DNA of 64,000 bases from Geosiphon pyriformis uo1 (lineage: Eukaryota > Fungi > Glomeromycota), in NCBI GenBank assembly GCA_016748015.1, contig JAAOMT010000070.1:364761-428760 (forward strand), given 5' to 3'. Position numbers and translations under genes: made by a program. The stretch's first letter is position 1, and each line of letters opens with the position of its first letter. Positions 39,601 through 49,700 of this stretch are shown piece after piece. The notes under the pieces were generated by a model. The model was not told where the DNA came from and made no database searches. It saw nothing but the letters and a program-made list of their open reading frames with translations.

Positions 39601-41355
39601 AATAGGTCAAGTGTTCATAAGAACTCCCTCCCACTCATAAGGCTTGGAGATCATAGACACCCAGGCTTCCTTTCAAGGACTGGGAACTGACTCATGGAGC
39701 AAACAAGAGTTCAAGAGCACCAACAACATATTCAGAACCAATTCGTCACAATGCTTTCAAAGCTCATTCAAAATACCAGACAAACCAGCAGCTTTATCAT
39801 TAGACAATTCTGAAACAACACCAAGCAATTCAATAGAACTAATAGGGTCCATTATTCTCGAAAATACATCATCAAATACATACTCCAAGGGTTGGTACTG
39901 GCAACACCAATCAGCAGAGATATCAGTGACCAACTCGCATTTTCTGGTCCAGCCTTCTATGATAACATCTACCTTAAATTTAACTAAACTAGGATCCAAA
40001 ACCAGTTTATTATCGACAACCAAGTGATCCAATACTACCTTGTGAAAAGAGTGCTCTAACACACTCTTAATTGTATGACCCTTATCCACCTCAAAACTTT
40101 CCATCCTCCTACTAACTGCTGATCTAATACGAGATTCTTTAGCATGCTTCGACTCGGACAATTTAGAGAAACGATACAACTTCCTGACTCTGAACAAAAC
40201 AGATCTTATGACCTCAAAATGCGACCCTGAAAGAAAAAGAGACTCCACCACAGAAGTATTTGTAGCGTTCAACAAGTTCCACGTACCCAGTAATACAACA
40301 AATTCCTTAGAGAAAACCAAACATGATGCTTTAACTAGTTTAAACACCAAAAGTTCTAACTTGTGAAACTTAGAAGATTTCTTAGTAAACACATTATTAT
40401 AACCCTTGAACCATTTCTTTTTGAAAACATCATTTGCTGATAAGCACACAATTTTGTGGATGATGTTCCATATAGCATCCAGATCCAGAAACAATAGAGC
40501 AGCATCAAACTCGCACTTAAATATTGCCGTGGTGGCAGCAGAAGATTCCTTGAATGCAGCCCATTTGGCAGTTGTGGCATCTTTAAAGTTGAACCTCCAA
40601 CGATTCTTATTTGCCTATTTGTGAAGGAACATCAAATTAACATCCAAAAGACCTCTCAGGTCCACGAAAACAATAACAGTTCTATGATTAGTATCAAAAT
40701 ATTCATCAACTCTGGTTACACTACAATCTAAGATTGCATTGACCAAGCTTAATGACACAAACACATAATCAATAGTCTTGGTTACTCCTCGAGAATTGGT
40801 CCAAGTTACATTCTTTCCAAACAAGCTCCTTCCTAAGACATTGACCAAACCCAAATCAAAACATTTCCTGAAACTAGTACACTTGTGAAAGCCATCTTCA
40901 TTGAAATCACCACCCAATATCATGAAAGAAGACTCATTAACAGCTTTAGTAATCAAAGAATTTATCTCATCCACTTGTGAGAAGCATGCAGATACTGAAG
41001 CACCAGCATACAAACCCAGAATCAACACTGAAAGCTTATTTTTGAAAAGCAGTTTGACAGACAAAAGACGACTAGAAACCTCAAAAACTTTACATACATG
41101 TTTTGCCAAAGTGTTGTTCATAATAATTGCCACACCAGAACCAAGGTAACCAGAATCCAAACCAGAAACAAAAACCTAAACACTATTGAATTTATTAGCA
41201 ATCCAAGGCCAAACCTTATCTTTTAACTTTGTTTCAATAATAATTGAAACCAAATTGTTCATATCTCTGTGCCAACGTACAATGTCCACTTGCTTTGCTG
41301 AATTGTTCATTTCCCTGACATTACATGTGGCTATTTTCCATACTAAATTATTTAT
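36664..41355 (-). pseudogene. LINE A ORF2
   Basis: Consecutive fragments carrying APE, RT, RNase H and zinc-finger motifs. Confidence 0.9.
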
Positions 41356-43232
41356 TGAAGTACAGAAGAGACTGCAGAACCCGAGCCAGCACACATCTGA
41401 TTTAATTTCTCCAATACCGAACAAACCAAAGCTTTGAGAGCCATTAACTTCGACTCCAAACATCCCACTTTCAAAGTTAAAATTTTTGAACTACTTGAAC
41501 CTAAACTTGAGGCACCAGAGGAAACCGAAAAAGGAGGAAGAACCACAGACTTAGGTTCATTCAAAACCATATCCGAACCAAATTTCAAATTAACCGACCT
41601 AGGGACAACTAAGGACTGAGAGGAGAAGGCAAAAGCCAAGAACACCAGGTTTAAACTGTTAGGTTTGTCAACAATACCAGACATTTTATCCATGAAAAGT
41701 TTCAAAGAGTGCTCCAAAGAAGTGAGACAAGTTTCCAAAAATGAACTAACAGAACCCGTAGGAGACAAGTGATCAACCACACCTGAGGCACCAAAAGAAG
41801 AGCCAAAACCAGGACCAGAACCAAAGTGAGGACCATTAGACGAAGATACCAGAAAGACAACCTGGACCCATGATTTGCCGCCGAATGCAGCTGGTCTGGA
41901 AATAAGCACACTTTTTTTCACATACAGCTTGGCCAACTGGAGGCAATTCTCATCAGAGACAACTCTTTTAAATGACTTGGAAAGAGTAAGAGAGGTTGAG
42001 GTTTCAGCATCACACTTTAGAACAGAATGATCAAGTTTCCCATACTGTTCGCACTGAACCATGTCCAATCTAGCCCAAGACAGTCTCACTCTACCAAAAA
42101 TAGGCTCTGTACAAAATGCAGACTCCAATTCCTTGTCATTCTCAAAACAAACCACAGCACAATAAACCCTATTACCAGTGTCTAAGAATCGATTTATGAC
42201 ACAAGTTTTCCCACCAGCCCCTACCAAAAGATCGCCAAGATCATGAACTGTTGTTTCCACTGGCAAAGTAAATAAAAGCATCTTATACTGATCTCTAGAT
42301 GCTTATGTCTTATGATCCCTTACAGCTTTGACCACATGCACTGAATCTTTCCTGATTAAGAATGACTACTTAGTTGCCAACTGATCTGCCTGACTCGATT
42401 TGGCAAACTCTACTACAGCTTTCTGTCACAGCCCAATGAGTTACAATTGGATTGACACCATTTAACCAAACTCGGATACTGCGGCAACAATCATTTCTTT
42501 TGGCGTATCCATAGGAATTTCCTTGATGACTATGGCCCGATCTGAGCGAACTCCTTGTCTTTTAAGATCACTGTTTATTATGATGTTATTTTTCCCAGCC
42601 AATAAGACGGCTTTTTCCATGCTTTCTGATGAAGTAAATGTCGATTTGATGATCTCTTCAAATTTTGAGGCAGTAGTGGCCCCCCCAAAACCATTGATTT
42701 CTGAAAATAATTTTCTTATAACCTGAGTTTTGGCCATTGCCGATTTCTCTTCTACAGCTGAAAGATCAATGTCCAAAGCAAAAGATTTTTTCACAGACAC
42801 CTCAACCTGAGTTTTAACAATTTTAGGATCAATCCACTTTTTATCTAGAGGGATAGACACATGAAGGGAAAGCATAATTTCATCATTATCTATAGTGAAG
42901 TCAGGAGAGCCAAGTAGAGATCCAAACATTGTGCCAGTATTAACACGTTTTGCCTTGAGAGTGGTTGTAGCTGAACCCAAAAGAGACCCTCCATGTACAC
43001 CTGTTATGCCAACATCCTTATCATTACCAGACAAACTATCCACATTAGAGTACATACTATTACCAGGTTCAGATTTACCTAAAGAGATATCTCTCTCATC
43101 ACCAGAGTGTTTAACATTGCCAAGAACCACCCTTTTTTTCTGAGCAAAAGAACCACCAGCAGAACCATGGAAAGCACCTTTGGGTGCCTTTTTTTTTGAC
43201 ATATCACCACTCGAAGCAGTTTTCAAATCCAT
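41352..43232 (-). pseudogene. LINE A ORF1 (gag-like, with a decayed CCHC)
   Basis: ORFs 42462-43232 and 41352-42281; CEQYGKLDHSVLKC; homologous to 61534-63442. Confidence 0.85.
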
Positions 43233-43749
43233 GACGAAGAGGTTATTGTTTAAGGAAATGTTGAAAGAAAACTAACAAGAAAAAATAAAAAACTTCTTTT
43301 TCAGAAAATGCACTTTTTGAGGATTTTTGGAGGTAAGAGAGAAAGAAGTTTCTTTTTAATTAAAAAAATTGAAATAAAAATAATAAAAAAAAAACAAAAC
43401 AAAAAACTTTTTTTTTAAAAATATGCTTTTAAAAAATTTTAAATATAAGAAAAAAAAAAAATTTTTAATTTAAATAATTAATTATACATAAATAAATATA
43501 TTAAGTTTTGTTTATTTTAAAATATTTATTGTTATATTACAATAAATATTATTTATTAAAATAAAATAATATAAAATTTTAAAAATAAGATAAAATAATT
43601 AAAATATTAAAATTAATACAAAATATTTTGTATTATTAAAAACCTGTTTTTATTTTTAAGTTAAAATTGTTTTTTTATTTAATTAAAATATTTTTTATTA
43701 AATATATAAATTTAAATTATTGTTGTAATTTACTTTTATTTATTTATTA

Positions 43750-44660
43750 ATATTAACTTTAATTATAATTATTAATAAAATACAATTTTTATTTTTATTT
43801 ATTTTAAAATTAATTTATTAAATAAAAATAATATTATATATAGTTTAAGAAAAAACATATATATTTATAAGCATAAAATAAAATTAAATTTAAAAAAGTT
43901 TAAATAAATTTTAAAAAAAATTATAAATTAATTTATTAAATAAAACTTATATTTACAAATATGCAACTAAAATCAATAATTATAAAACATGTAAAAAATT
44001 ATTATTATAATTTTATAACTTAATAAAATCTTTGTTTTTTATAAAAAATTCAATATTTAAACTTTTAAACTTTTAAATATTTTAAATTTTGACAAGTACT
44101 AAATTATAAAAATTGATTCAAAAATAATACTTGTAATATTTGGTGCTTTTTATAAGATATAAATCATAAAAAACATAATATTACTAAAAAAAAATCAAAA
44201 AATAACAAACCAAGTTAATATTTTAAGATTTAATTAAGTATTATATAATTACTATAAAAAATTTTTTTTGGGTAAAATTATTATTTAATTAAAAAAAATT
44301 TTTACCAAAAACTTTTATAATATTTAATTTTTCTAACAATAAAAGTTTTTACAAAAACAATTATTTCAATTTATATTAGTAAAGTCAAAAACATCCAAGC
44401 TAAAAGTAAAAATAATTCTGAATTAGAATTTAAAACTGCAAATCAACAAAAACTAAAAACATTTGTTGCCATTCCAAAATAAAAATCAAATTAACCACTA
44501 GTTTTTAAACAACAAATCTATTCACCTGACAAACTGTTATATTACAAATTTGTTGAAAAAAATATTTTTATTATTAACAAAACCAACTCCAAAAACACTG
44601 AATTATCAGAACTCTCTGAAAAAGAATATCCCCGAACCCGATCTTAAATCCACTAGTAAT
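43750..44660 (+). mobile_element. Extremely eroded Gypsy relic: LTR end, PBS and start of gag
   Basis: TGTAATA (44132-38) followed by TTTGGTGCTTTTTATAAG; upstream sequence resembles 7530-7671; 44410-44540 resembles gag NQQKLET..QRIYSP of element 3. Left edge uncertain. Confidence 0.55.
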
Positions 44661-44739
44661 CTCGGATTATAGAGATTGTGAAAGTACAAATAAACATGCA
44701 GCCATAACCCTAGGGTCTTTAACATGCATGCAGTTTCCA

Positions 44740-44820
44740 TCATGCAAATGAAACAAACAAACAAGCCCTTGACCAATCATCCTCCGATAATCTAATTGGC
44801 AAGATTATTGAATAAAAATT
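44740..44820 (+). promoter_or_regulatory. Putative Pol II promoter of the structured ncRNA
   Basis: ATGCAAAT at 44742, CCAAT at 44773, ATTGG at 44795 and AATAAAAA at 44811, all just before the structured region. Confidence 0.35.
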
Positions 44821-44824
44821 GAAG

Positions 44825-46011
44825 CAAGCGAGTGTTCTTTGGTTCTTTGGTTCTTTCCGATGTTTCATTTGTTGCTGTACATAAGGTTAACGCGAATCGT
44901 AAAGCACTCTTTTAACCTAACCCTAACCAAGAGTTGAGTATACCCGCTCCCACAAGAGCATCAGAAGTGTATCGTTGTCCTTTTCAGGCCAAACGCATTT
45001 CATACTCGTCGGTCGCTTAGACCTGCAACGGTTGACTGGCCAGCAACCGTTTGTGGGTCTTAGACTGCATCTGTTCCCAGATTCGATCGATTTTAAGTCT
45101 TTACAATTCGCGTAAGGGCAAGATAAGGGTGGTTGCGCCAACTGTAGCTCTGCCGTTAGGTGTACTCTACGGTTGTCAGTCTCTCTTGATTTGCTACCTT
45201 TGAACTTGGGTAACTTTGTTTATTGGGGCTCACCAAGGATTTCTGAGCCTATTCCAAGGCTAGACGTAATCATCTGAATTGTCCAGACCTAATTTATGGT
45301 CCTCTTGTGGCTTGTCTTGTGGAGGTTTGTGAAACAAATCTTCATTCGGCTTGTCACTTGTTGGAGTTCTTCCATTGGGATAAGCATTCGATCAGTGAAT
45401 TGCCTTTCATTTATTGCTGTACATGAGGTTAACGGGAAACGTAAAACCACTCGTCGGTTGCTTAGACCTGCGATGGTATTTATAATTCGCGTAAGGGCAA
45501 GATAAGGGTGGTTGCGCCAACTGTAGCTCTGCACTTAGGTGTACTCTATGGTTGTCAGTCTCTCTTGGTGTGCTTCCTTTGAACTTAGGTAACTTTGTTC
45601 ATTGGGGGTCATCAGTGATTTCTGAGGCCATTCCAAAGCCAGACGTAATCATCTGAATTGTCCAGATCTAATATATGGTCCTCTTGTGGCTTGTCTTGTC
45701 TTGTGGAGGTTTGCGCCCTCTCCAGAATTGTCATTGTCACGATGAAAATAAAGGCAACTCAACTTAAACCATCAAAACCTGACATTCTGGCAGAAGCAGA
45801 TCTCTATTCGACTTGTCTGTCACTTGTTGGAGTTCTTCCAGTGGGATAAGCATCCGATCAGTGAATGGTAGGATTGGATCCTACCCAGTCTTTATGCTAC
45901 TACCTCATCGTGGTGACTGGTGACAACAGGATGATATCATTTCATTCTGGCTAAACGTAGCAATGTTTCTTCTCTTTGGATCGGAAGATGCGGGATCGTG
46001 TTTCCACATAT
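44825..46011 (+). ncRNA. Candidate telomerase RNA (long structured ncRNA)
   Basis: CCTAACCCTAACC at 44916-44928; boundary-type stem AGGTTAA/TTAACCT just 5' of it; many hairpins; no credible ORF; CpGs retained; P6.1-like AGGA-TTGGA-TCCT at 45870-82; possible H box at 45923-28 and ACA at 46006-08. No pseudoknot identified; ends are estimates. Confidence 0.5.
44863..45866 (+). repeat. Diverged tandem duplication: unit A 44863-45400, unit B 45405-45866
   Basis: Long shared blocks such as AATTCGCGTAAGGGCAAGATAAGGGTGGTTGCGCCAACTGTAGCTCTGC and AGACGTAATCATCTGAATTGTCCAGA, with block indels between the units. Confidence 0.95.
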
Positions 46012-46719
46012 CCTTTTCTTACAAATCAATAGCGATGGCCTGAAAGAATTACCGTAATTTGCTGCATAAAAGACTCCCCTTATTGTAGATCCAATTATGT
46101 ATCACAAATTGTTTAACTTCCAACATTTTAATTTACAATTCCAAGGTATTATTTTCAGCAAACACAAAAAGGTTGAGCTTTGTATGTAAATAAACAGGCA
46201 GTAAAACCGAAAAACCTACAGGCCTACTAGATGATTTTTAACTTCCCAAAGAATACGTGAAAGTTAAAGGAGCACACAAGTAAACAGGTCAGTGATGGTT
46301 CCGAAGCGCCTGCATAGACAGATGAATTTCAAGACTTTCATAGAGTAAATCAAAATTTTCAAGCATTGTATGAGCTGTTACTGTTGGTAAAAATTTACAA
46401 TATTGAACCATTCAATGTCACCAAATGATGATAAATGCCGAAACATTTATTAGAAGCTTTGGGAAAAATGTTATAAAACATTTGCCGTTTCATCAACACC
46501 ATCTGTCTAATACGTTACTGAACTGTCAGATATTATCATAGATCCTGGGCCATCTAATTTGAAGTATAAAAGTGAGAGACTAATCTTTAACTGGTTTGGC
46601 CGCCACTAAACTCTGATTACTCAAAAAATTTTAAATTCTGATTCAAGAAAACAGTAATATTGAATATGCTTCCGTAAGATTCATTATTTGAAATGAGATA
46701 CTAAATTTCCTCTAAATCC

Positions 46720-49700
46720 TTATTCCGCTTCTTCCTCTTCATCAAAATCAATGTCCCCCTCTTCTTCCTCTTCTTCATTCATGTCAAATATTAAAATCTT
46801 ACGCGAGTCTTCACTCAATAAACATATCTCTTTACCATTGCTGGTTGCTAGCTTTGTTGGCCGAAATTGAGTTATAGGGCGCGATTTGGAAAATTCAATA
46901 ATGGGACATTCATCAACATTCTAAGAAAGTAAAAAATTAAAAGGTTGAATTTTTAAGACAACCGTCTAATAGTATACAATGATTCGTAACCTACCAGTTT
47001 AGCTTGCTCTACGGGATTTTCAAAATCTCTTTGGGATATATAATTTAAATCCCTATAGTTTAACTCGGCCAAGTAATTTACCTCGATACCTAATAAAATC
47101 GAAACTTAGATCATGTTTGAATATTTTTATCAGGAAAATATAGTGTTGATTATACACCGTTTTCATCGTTTTGCCTCGTCAACATTATTAATCTTCTATC
47201 ATTAAAAAATTGAAGATCGATGACAGTAACGATATTATCCGAACCCGCTTCCGTTGTGAGTTTAAGGCAAGCCAGCTCACAAGTGTTATCTTTGTAAATT
47301 CCTTCAACGGGATTTTGGGCGTCACGAGGAAGTAGAAATCTTATTACCCATACTAAGAATGGGGCGAAATATTAAATCTTGACATAAAATAGTTAAAATA
47401 TTAAAATGATATTTATTACTTACACGTGTTTCCATTAAATTTGGAGAGAGAATCTGGTAAAAAAAAGGCAACGTATTGATGGATCACTAATTCCTAAATA
47501 ATAATTGGAAACTTAAAAAGATGTTAAACACCTAAGAAACAAGTTTTCCTTATTTTGAGAGTATACCTCGACAAAGATTTTTGCATCAATTATGAATTTG
47601 GTGCCTAAATGAGCATCCTGAGATTCACCGTCCTCATGCGCTTCAGCTTTCTCAAGATATTCATTAGTAGTTAAATTCAATATTGTGATCGACTTACTCG
47701 CCACTACAGATTTTGCCACCTTATTGGCAGTCGAAGCATATATAGTTGCACACTGATTGGCTATATTATCAATAAACCAACGAAGGTTGTTGGAAGTACC
47801 ATTTTCTCCATTTGGTATATTGATCTGGGTAAAGTCGTAAGGATATGCGCAAAAGCTATCAGCTAAAATTGATTGAAAAATTAAAGAATGTTGGAGATTA
47901 ATTCAATAAAGTTGAAAATTTTGAATCAGTTTATTGCTTGAAAAATATTTCACCCAAAATATCATCGACACTTTTTGATCTGGTGACTGGTGTAGTCAAT
48001 ATCGAAGCTTCTGAAAGACCCTCAATTTCAACGGCGGCTACGGTTGAGGAATTCTCAACAAAATATTGATCCAGCACGTCCTTTTCCAGTGAATTTTTCA
48101 AATATGAAGCAACTTTGTCAACATCACAATGTGTTGGCGCTTCTGGACCAGAACCATGATCCATTGATATTAGGTTTTCAAATTCTGTGATTTCAAAAAT
48201 GATCAACACTTTCTGCAAAAAGAAACATTTATATATGAAAATTTAGTTAATACTAGCCGGCTTGAAGCCATTCTTGAAACTCCATGAAATTTTGATATTC
48301 GCGCTCAATTGCCAATAGCAACTCTTCCAAACGGTTGATCATATATCCGGTTAGGAGTACACAAGAGTGGACAAATTTTTCTGTGAGCCCAAGTTGATCG
48401 AATTTTTGGGGCCTTATGAAGTTTCCAATTAATTAAAGAAGATACTAGCGAATAGCTTTACATCAATGATTATTTACCACTTACTATACCCGACAAGTGC
48501 GGTAAGTTGTAATAGCAGTCTCTCGCAACCAGGCCGCACATAGTCATGCACAAATTCACGGATTTGTTCGAGACTTTTGAGACCCTTGTTATCCCAATCT
48601 TTCAGCCCCTATTAATAATAAGAATCAGGTAAGAATTGAAATTTAGGATTTTCTAAGGATCGTTTACCCTTTTAGTTAACCGGTTTTCGATGTACTCGCT
48701 CAATATGATGCTTGGTTTCCCTGTTGCGAGCAAACGCGCGAATTCTGATGCCAAGGTAGTATTCGCTTTTAGCCCCATTTATGATCACACGCCACATCAT
48801 AAATAAAGCAAGTAGTTTTATCTGATTTTTGTTACGTATAGTCTAGTGTTCCTTAAAAAAATATTAAGAAGCCTTACAACTATGGTTTCCTAAAACCTCT
48901 TGAAAAGGAAATGTGTAAGCTTTGGCTGATTCTTTCATGTGATTGTATTGTGACTGCATTTGCTTAAGTCCTTCCACAATGTAATTGATTAAATACTTGA
49001 TTATTGTATATCTTTGGGACAGGATGCGTATTTCAGGTTTGTGAGAATGAAGCAAGCCAGTATCCAAGGTTAACTCAATGTAGTGATTCGGCCGTTTTAA
49101 TACAGAAGTCAATTGTGAAGAGTTGCTTTCGCCATCCATTAAAATCAAAAGGTTTAGAAGAGAGAGATCAGGTGTAACTGACGCATTTAAAATTCGTGCC
49201 CTCTGATGAAGATGGTACAGTTAAAATCAAATCAGCTGTTGCGAAGCAGATCAAAAATTTCAGACCAAGTCCAAGAGCTCTTACCATTGATTTAGTATGT
49301 TCTAGCAATGATATCGATTCAAGATTATATATTCCGTAAACACTAAAAATTCAATATTAATTTTATTGATTGAATAGGATGAAATTGAAGAACCGGTCAA
49401 TAGTTTAACTAACTCCGAAGAAAATGATTCTCACCTCAAATGCAAGTTGCCATCCGCATCCCCAGCTACAAGTAAATCAATCGATTTAGTTTTTTCGTCC
49501 TCAAAATTTTCCCCATCAACTTCAGACGGATATCCAAGTACTTTGCTTGAAGATTTATAAATTTAAAAATAATTGTTAGAAAATAGAAGGAATGAGGATT
49601 ATTATCCGGTAATCGATAATGGGTTACCTGATTTTGGATCCAGGGATAGTGCTCAAACGTGGCATGTATTTCTCAGCTGGATGAGTGCTCGAGTAATTTA

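Follow-up and report, generated by a model that had tools for sequence, protein, structure and literature searches.

Where is the telomerase RNA of an early-diverging fungus encoded? We addressed this question for Geosiphon pyriformis uo1 (Glomeromycota), using a stretch of 64,000 nucleotides (nt), hereafter the window, which corresponds to positions 364,761 to 428,760 of the forward strand of contig JAAOMT010000070.1 (assembly GCA_016748015.1). Coordinates refer to the window unless another contig is named. A first-pass annotation, made by a model that saw the letters and their open reading frames (ORFs), had proposed a telomerase RNA gene at 44825-46011. Telomerase RNAs are known from vertebrates, other animals, Ascomycota, some Basidiomycota, plants and ciliates, and they evolve so fast that each new lineage needed fresh discovery; for Mucoromycota, Glomeromycotina and chytrids, our literature searches turned up none that is established. 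Our results suggest that this region is probably a telomerase RNA gene with an internal tandem duplication. Of the sites that we compared it is the strongest candidate for this role, and the support for it is computational only.

A telomerase RNA must carry a template that matches the telomeres of its genome. Across the assembly that we searched (128 Mb, 792 contigs), contig starts carry CCCTAA arrays and contig ends the complement (865 24-mers vs 0 for the control), in agreement with the TTAGGG chromosome ends that the first-pass annotation had wanted confirmed. The candidate template, CCTAACCCTAACC, occupies 13 nt at 44916-44928 on the + strand, where it had first been noticed; it occurs once in the window, with 0.03 occurrences expected. 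Its CCCUAA register contains the vertebrate template CUAACCCUAAC and covers at least ~1.5 telomere repeats. The telomere arrays also hold CCCTAT units, which strictly alternate with CCCTAA on C9. A 24-nt subtelomeric satellite, CCCTATCCCTATCCCTATAAATAT, is found at many contig ends and includes CCCTAT units, which we therefore read as subtelomeric and not as made by telomerase. Sites of at least 15 nt with A/T wobble were considered as templates for this variant; apart from a few isolated ones, they proved to be subtelomeric satellite.

The template lies in an island with a GC content of 0.44; the window as a whole has 0.30, and the sequence immediately upstream 0.06-0.2. The ratio of observed to expected CpG is 0.68 in the island, 0.55 in the window and 0.90 in the neighboring gene APC4; the island had been described as rich in both GC and CpG, and only the first part of this description holds well, CpG being only mildly raised. 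No credible ORF had been seen, and indeed the longest ORF of the region has 81 aa and none has a Pfam match. Whole-genome DNA searches indicated that 44400 to ~45720/45837 is single copy: apart from the locus, a search with 44825-46011 returned nothing but short matches to the 3' part, and no second genomic copy of 44400-44900 was found. The core of the candidate has no other copy in the genome; multicopy sequence of a transposable element (TE) was an outcome that the first-pass annotation had named as speaking against its own proposal.

The locus presents a fold signal that is strand-specific. Positions 44840-45404 (+) reached -181.7 kcal/mol with a z-score of -4.09 (0/100 shuffles as stable), versus a z of -0.29 for the reverse complement. 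When 250-nt windows were slid from 44925 to ~45925, seven of the eight had z values of -2.0 to -5.2 on the + strand (the other one -0.57), compared to +0.7 to -2.3 on the - strand over the same range; 64 control windows taken from the rest of the 64-kb window had a mean z of -0.45 (standard deviation 1.09, minimum -3.43). The closed core, 44885-45115 (231 nt), yielded a z of -6.13, with none of 200 shuffles as stable. The source of this signal is not simple repeats or long inverted repeats, and strand specificity of this kind is the pattern expected of G-U-rich RNA helices.

In both the minimum-free-energy and centroid folds, 44890-44905 (+) pairs with 45097-45113 (+) in a 15-bp helix that encloses a 224-nt domain and that remains when the template hairpin is forbidden. 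The 5' strand of this core-closing helix is also the candidate template-boundary helix. A template hairpin is predicted at 44906-44934 (+), with a stem formed by ACUCUU (44906-11) and AAGAGU (44929-34) and a 17-nt loop, UUAACCUAACCCUAACC (44912-28), which includes the perfect CCCUAA register of 44916-28. The position of the template in a loop beside the closing helix, with a 6-bp stem flanking both sides, is a thermodynamic prediction only. Within the core, two helical arms are predicted (+), one at 44936-45007 and one at 45008-45091 that includes a hairpin of 20 bp (45016-45063). Telomerase RNAs of vertebrates and of fungi other than yeasts are described as having a helix next to the 5' side of the template together with one that encloses the core (PMC3592445). 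The first-pass annotation had seen a possible template boundary in AGGTTAA (44884-90) and TTAACCT (44912-18), which are complementary as claimed, and hairpins at positions where the minimum-free-energy folds also place them (45016-45063, ~45113-45201 and 45867-85). Its two helices for closing the domain can form, since AAGCGA (44826-31) is complementary to TCGCTT (45013-18) and CCGATG (44857-62) pairs with CGTCGG (45007-12), one of the pairs being G-U, but neither is the closure that the fold prefers, which is the 15-bp helix.

The island is an imperfect tandem duplication, a feature absent from the first-pass annotation, whose copies, A (44863-45404) and B (45405-45866, + strand), are ~91% identical. 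Copy B is without 44906-45002 (97 nt, including the template) and 45031-45096 (66 nt) and has an extra stretch of ~80 nt (45714-45792). The structured module of copy A (45097-45404, +) is predicted to fold into a multi-branch domain closed by ~45116-45137/45265-45284, and copy B is strongly structured as well (sliding z to -5.19). The module common to both copies has 59 predicted pairs; five substitutions between the copies affect them, and all five keep the pair while none breaks it. Such substitutions would favor a real structure, but they are suggestive only, the structure having been fitted to both sequences.

A connection to telomerase that does not depend on the template came from the TERT genes. 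We located TERT on C572 (C572:750000-759999), with Telomerase_RBD in two exons and with reverse transcriptase motifs recognized by eye in open exons. A TERT paralogue on C608 (C608:674000-683999) looks decayed. The paralogues are 71-84% identical over ~4 kb, and C572 has 1.7 kb that are absent from C608 and that hold a 209-aa ORF without Pfam match. The candidate locus contains a segment similar to the sequence upstream of TERT (45929-46058, +), with ~86% identity over 124 aligned nt (45929-46051) and alignable to ~46058. Positions 45929-46051 match 9419-9542 of C572:750000-759999 (86% identical), ~0.7 kb from the 209-aa ORF, and 45980-46051 match 7554-7626 of C608:674000-683999 (85% identical). 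This 124-nt segment has three genomic copies in all, and the other two are upstream of the TERT paralogues; by length, the chance that the only relatives of a random low-copy segment stand beside TERT is roughly 1e-5. We take the link as modest independent support for a telomerase connection. The shared segment may be a regulatory element, a templated insertion or a sign of common history.

The 3' part of the locus has one more relative. C379:42352-42511 is a partial diverged copy (~87%) of 45783-46089, which holds the end of copy B, a decayed version of the P6.1-like hairpin described below, the 5' half of a ribozyme-like fold and 46054-46089, and which is without 45805-45836 and 45936-46055. 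No Pfam match was found in its flank. This copy may be a fragmentary duplicate or a retro-copy of the 3' end of the RNA. Because it lacks the 124-nt segment, the segment looks inserted at the candidate locus, with the TERT upstream region as donor. The 3' limit initially given for the gene, 46011, falls within this inserted segment, and the structured, locus-specific part ends at ~45885-45930.

The folds place two hairpins at the end of this structured part, ~950 nt downstream of the template. The first (45820-45864, +) is a P6-like hairpin of 45 nt, with a second one at the end of copy A (45354-45398). The other, GGUAGGA-UUGGA-UCCUACC (45867-45885, +), is P6.1-like and its loop fits NUNGN, the consensus of P6.1 being a 4-bp stem with a 5-nt NUNGN loop (PMC3592445). 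Within it, AGGA-UUGGA-UCCU (45870-82) is the only all-Watson-Crick 4-bp hairpin with a NUNGN loop at the locus; no P5 was identified. Folded together, the P6-like and P6.1-like hairpins have a z of -3.27. The predicted hairpins of 45820-45885 thus resemble P6/P6.1, but with the wrong stem length.

An HDV (hepatitis delta virus)-like ribozyme fold adjoins these hairpins at 45884-45962 (+). Against Rfam RF02682, which has a gathering score of 44, it reaches 27.5 bits (E 0.032 in 4 kb, 0.16 in 20 kb), and it is the best sub-threshold Rfam match of the 64-kb window. Its helices are P1 (45885-90/45915-20), P3 (45902-04/45912-14), P4 (~45927-31/45945-49) and P2 (45895-900/45957-62), the latter a perfect 6 bp that was read from the sequence and lies outside the Rfam model; its loops are L3 (UCAUCGU, 7 nt, 45905-11) and J4/2 (GCUAAA). 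All parts of the nested double pseudoknot are present, namely P1, P2, P3, the 7-nt L3, P4 and J4/2 with the catalytic C. The fold shares these helices and L3 with HDV-like ribozymes of the drz-Fpra type (RF02682), as well as J4/2 GCUAA and the core ACCUC..CGUGGUGA. It differs from them by its lower score and by the first pair of P1, which is C-G (6-bp P1) or C/U (7-bp P1) where a G-U wobble is usual at the cleavage site. In addition, no ribozyme was matched by Rfam at the sister copies on C379, C572, C608 and C714. The two halves of the fold have different relatives, which complicates the ribozyme reading. An active ribozyme would cleave at 45884/45885, or one nucleotide further upstream if P1 has the 7 bp of the Rfam alignment, and the cut would leave the P6.1-like hairpin as the 3' end of the RNA. 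We know of no such ribozyme described directly 3' of a candidate telomerase RNA and of no telomerase RNA with a 3' end made by an HDV-like ribozyme.

How much of the case can rest on the template motif? Outside perfect arrays, the genome has 18 left-anchored sites with 13 nt or more of any of the six registers, compared to 14 for the reversed control. By itself, the 13-mer is at chance frequency across the genome, so that the case rests on its context. Two of the 18 sites are array edges, and 15 rivals were checked besides the candidate. Fourteen of these were folded on the motif-sense strand at five offsets (-250 to +940), and the one on C654 was folded on both strands only to ~+230 nt, with an assembly gap beyond. 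None of the 15 presented an extended structure, most being AT-rich and unstructured. Two rivals (L050 and L062) had single windows near a z of -5, which are microsatellites pairing with each other, and both were rejected; the C654 site, the other isolated copy of the exact 13-mer, was also discarded as AT-rich, unstructured and next to the gap. The first-pass annotation had suggested listing all genomic copies of the template; among the folded sites of at least 13 nt, the candidate alone has extended structure. The survey is limited to this length, and templates of 9-12 nt and four further sites of 15-22 nt (C371:237303, C714:1332656, C624:306126 and C646:460886) fall outside it.

Extended structured regions were not found among ~130 control windows, so that their share of the genome is probably well below 1%. 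Given ~18 chance sites, the expectation that a chance motif falls in such a region and in sense orientation is at most ~0.1. We estimate at about one in four the chance that the template of the true telomerase RNA is 13 nt or longer, and the candidate looks as a telomerase RNA with such a template should. These figures bear on the alternative that the locus encodes another structured non-coding RNA, such as a long non-coding RNA or a small nucleolar RNA precursor, in which the 13-mer is coincidental. We consider this unlikely. The signal of structure does not depend on the motif, copy B has no template and is just as structured, and the motif frequency given above, the absence of an outstanding pseudoknot and the non-canonical P6.1 all fit such an RNA. 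However, a sense 13-nt register is expected only ~3e-5 times within a given 1-kb RNA from base composition, 0/15 checked chance sites lie in extended structure, the motif does not have a random position but occupies a loop next to the closing helix, and the TERT-upstream link would need a second coincidence.

Together with the frequency of the motif and the length limit of the survey, several observations weigh against a telomerase RNA. A crude scan for H-type pseudoknots with a U-rich loop returned six candidates, versus a shuffle mean of 4.2, with scores within the shuffle range, and no U-tract/A-tract triple-helix motif was evident; a pseudoknot would be expected within the arms at 44936-45091. 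To our knowledge, a 6-bp stem that clamps both sides of the template has not been described for known telomerase RNAs. The P6.1-like stem has 7-8 bp where the canonical one has 4, and 4-bp hairpins with a NUNGN loop occur by chance 1.4 times per kb. A simple pattern found no Sm site in 44800-46300, although this pattern is insensitive and misses the Sm sites of the genome's own U1 and U2. No 5' splice site for 3' end formation was found, the sole similar hexamer being at 46182. The snRNA (small nuclear RNA)-type element TCCCACAATT and the 3' box AGTGGGG are both absent from the candidate, which is consequently not an snRNA-type gene. The candidate template cannot encode the CCCTAT units of the telomere arrays. 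Searches for the telomerase families of Rfam release 15 returned no match with E up to 10 in 43500-47500 and up to 5 in 43900-64000; a new lineage would be expected to give this result, yet it lends no support. Finally, 45720-46090 is a mosaic whose pieces have one or two copies elsewhere.

The search for homologues adds to these points. Searching APC4 exon by exon retrieved a fragment of Ambispora leptoticha (69% identity) plus Logan/ENA fragments. The first-pass annotation had proposed to search related genomes for a conserved template near APC4, and none came to light on the one useful contig, L028. On this contig of a relative, APC4 is followed downstream by a WD40-repeat-like gene and then TAF6; as other genes follow, the synteny of APC4 is not kept there and we draw no inference from the missing template motif. 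Spurious ORFs of the locus, used as handles to homologous loci, retrieved no exact record and no homologue, and neither synteny, spurious ORFs nor a metagenome scan yielded any homologue of the candidate. In the metagenome Ga0126336, the 21-mer around the template, TTTTAACCTAACCCTAACCAA, occurs in an unrelated tandem repeat of ~150 nt. Three contigs of this sample were rejected as homologues, as they share the tandem repeat only and are otherwise dissimilar to the locus.

The mosaic character of the 3' part raises the possibility that the locus is non-functional DNA, assembled from duplicated or captured low-copy fragments that include the relic of a ribozyme element and folding only incidentally. 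The pieces that make up 45722-46089 recur once or twice, on C618, C379, C572/C608 and C714, TE debris adjoins the locus, and the tandem duplication with its large deletions is in line with such an origin, as is an HDV-like fold that scores under the Rfam threshold and whose halves have different relatives. Nevertheless, this origin seems very unlikely to us: 44400 to ~45720 is without a copy elsewhere, inverted-repeat DNA does not give such strong strand specificity, pairs are kept in both copies, and neither ORFs, terminal repeats nor TE protein matches were found at the candidate locus.

It is also conceivable that the locus is a duplicate or a decaying paralogue, and that the working telomerase RNA gene is elsewhere, perhaps with a shorter template. 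Known telomerase RNA templates are often 8-11 nt long, whereas our survey took in sites of at least 13 nt only. In addition, TERT itself has decayed copies in this genome, and the locus underwent duplication, deletions and insertion. We give this explanation very little credence, however, as the whole-genome search found no paralogue of the core but only short 3' pieces, the core fold is exceptionally stable (z of -6.13) and the template register is uninterrupted.

On balance, we retain the reading of the region as a telomerase RNA gene as probable: the layout of the core and the TERT link add to it, and the missing pseudoknot, the odd P6.1 and the clamped template subtract from it. The claim of the first-pass annotation that this is the telomerase RNA locus stands in part. 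The TTAGGG telomeres, the single-copy core, the strand-specific fold and the template in a loop agree with it, but no pseudoknot rises above the shuffles, P6.1 is non-canonical and no homologue of the locus was found.

For this candidate, we infer transcription, RNA ends, TERT binding and template use as follows. The gene would span ~44830 to ~45885 on the + strand and would be transcribed by RNA polymerase II from a promoter of the CCAAT/TATA type. Upstream of it are promoter-like motifs on the + strand, namely ATGCAAAT (44743-50), CCAAT (44773-77), inverted CCAAT (44795-99) and the TATA-like AATAAAAAT (44811-19), all of which are consensus matches only. A presumed 5' leader follows at 44825-44889 (+), with a 5' end that is itself presumed, and contains GTTCTTTG/C in three tandem copies (44833-44856). 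Only one public run contains the locus, a small one of 46 M letters that we guess to be RNA; 78% of the sampled words of 44700-45900 are present in it, which lends weak support to the candidate gene. The 15-bp helix would enclose a catalytic core of 224 nt in which UUAACCUAACCCUAACC is kept single-stranded, and TERT would copy UUAACCUAACCCUAACC into GGTTAG repeats. The 5' boundary of the template would be set by the closing helix and possibly also by the ACUCUU/AAGAGU stem. The two tandem structured modules would act as scaffold arms, and the P6-like and P6.1-like hairpins of 45820-45885 would form the second TERT-binding element, equivalent to conserved regions 4 and 5 (CR4/5) or to a three-way junction. 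The 3' end would possibly be cut by the adjoining HDV-like ribozyme.

With the telomerase RNAs of Pezizomycotina and Taphrinomycotina (Neurospora crassa, Schizosaccharomyces pombe; Qi et al. 2013, PMC3592445), the candidate shares a length of ~1 kb or more, a template matching TTAGGG and the lack of RNA polymerase III or snRNA-type signals; its predicted fold resembles theirs in a core-enclosing helix beside the template and in long variable arms followed near the 3' end by a template-distal hairpin pair whose loop fits NUNGN. In contrast to them, it has no recognizable pseudoknot or triple helix, a P6.1-like stem of 7-8 bp instead of 4, no Sm or 5' splice site for spliceosomal 3' end formation that we could find, a template clamped in a hairpin, a tandem duplication, no sequence similarity and no Rfam match. 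With vertebrate telomerase RNA (RF00024), the candidate has in common the template core CUAACCCUAAC, CCAAT and TATA-like motifs upstream and a template that lies ~80 nt downstream of the 5' end, presumed for the candidate. The loop of human P6.1 is UUGGG, similar to the UUGGA of the candidate. The candidate differs from vertebrate RNA in having no covariance-model match and no demonstrated H/ACA domain.

Among other fungi, Ustilago telomerase RNA is matured from an mRNA-like precursor, and the candidate has a ribozyme-like fold at its 3' end. The telomerase RNA of Ustilago maydis and other Ustilaginales (PMC10035886) likewise comes from a lineage outside Ascomycota with TTAGGG-type telomeres and was approached through template search and structure; it has been confirmed by gene disruption in Ustilago maydis (PMC10035886), whereas the Geosiphon candidate is known from computation only. 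The one earlier proposal of a telomerase RNA that we found for an early-diverging fungus, a doubtful one, is the candidate of Lichtheimia corymbifera (PMC4133162). That candidate is ~150 nt long and ciliate-like, unlike the Geosiphon locus with its ~1 kb and its vertebrate/Dikarya layout, and according to its authors it has no homologue in other basal fungi (PMC4133162).

The candidate locus lies between TE debris and the 3' end of APC4, and both of these flanks, named in the first-pass annotation, were found. APC4 is encoded on the - strand from 50363 to 46723, where its last coding segment ends. The upstream neighbors are debris of a non-LTR (non-long-terminal-repeat) retrotransposon and then an AT-rich multi-copy tract. 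The debris spans 39757-43232 (-) and includes a weak match to Exo_endo_phos_2 at 40615-41160; its longer ORFs (41352-42281 and 42462-43232) are without Pfam match. The tract at 43300-44300 is extremely AT-rich (GC down to 0.06), and its sequence, of low complexity, has dozens of matches elsewhere in the assembly. Elsewhere in the genome, the U1 and U2 copies present TCCCACAATT upstream in 8/9 cases, ~75-85 nt before the start, an AGTGGGG-like box follows most of them, and most have a TATA-like box near -30. The combination of TCCCACAATT, TATA-like box and AGTGGGG-like box constitutes a usable signature for snRNA-type genes of this genome.

What would such a gene mean? It is rather doubtful, though conceivable, that the locus represents a new architectural type in which a vertebrate-like template core clamped in a hairpin loop goes together with duplicated scaffold modules, a P6.1-like hairpin as terminus, ribozyme cleavage at the 3' end and an element shared with the upstream region of TERT. 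If the ribozyme is real and is used at the 3' end, it would be a new maturation route for telomerase RNA. The sharing of 124 nt with the upstream region of TERT, if true, is a hint that the two telomerase genes are co-regulated or share a history. If confirmed, the RNA of Geosiphon would take a place between the telomerase RNAs of animals, of H/ACA type, and those of Dikarya, with their Sm site and spliceosomal cleavage; it would aid the reconstruction of the ancestral opisthokont RNA and would provide a seed to search for the gene in arbuscular mycorrhizal fungi.

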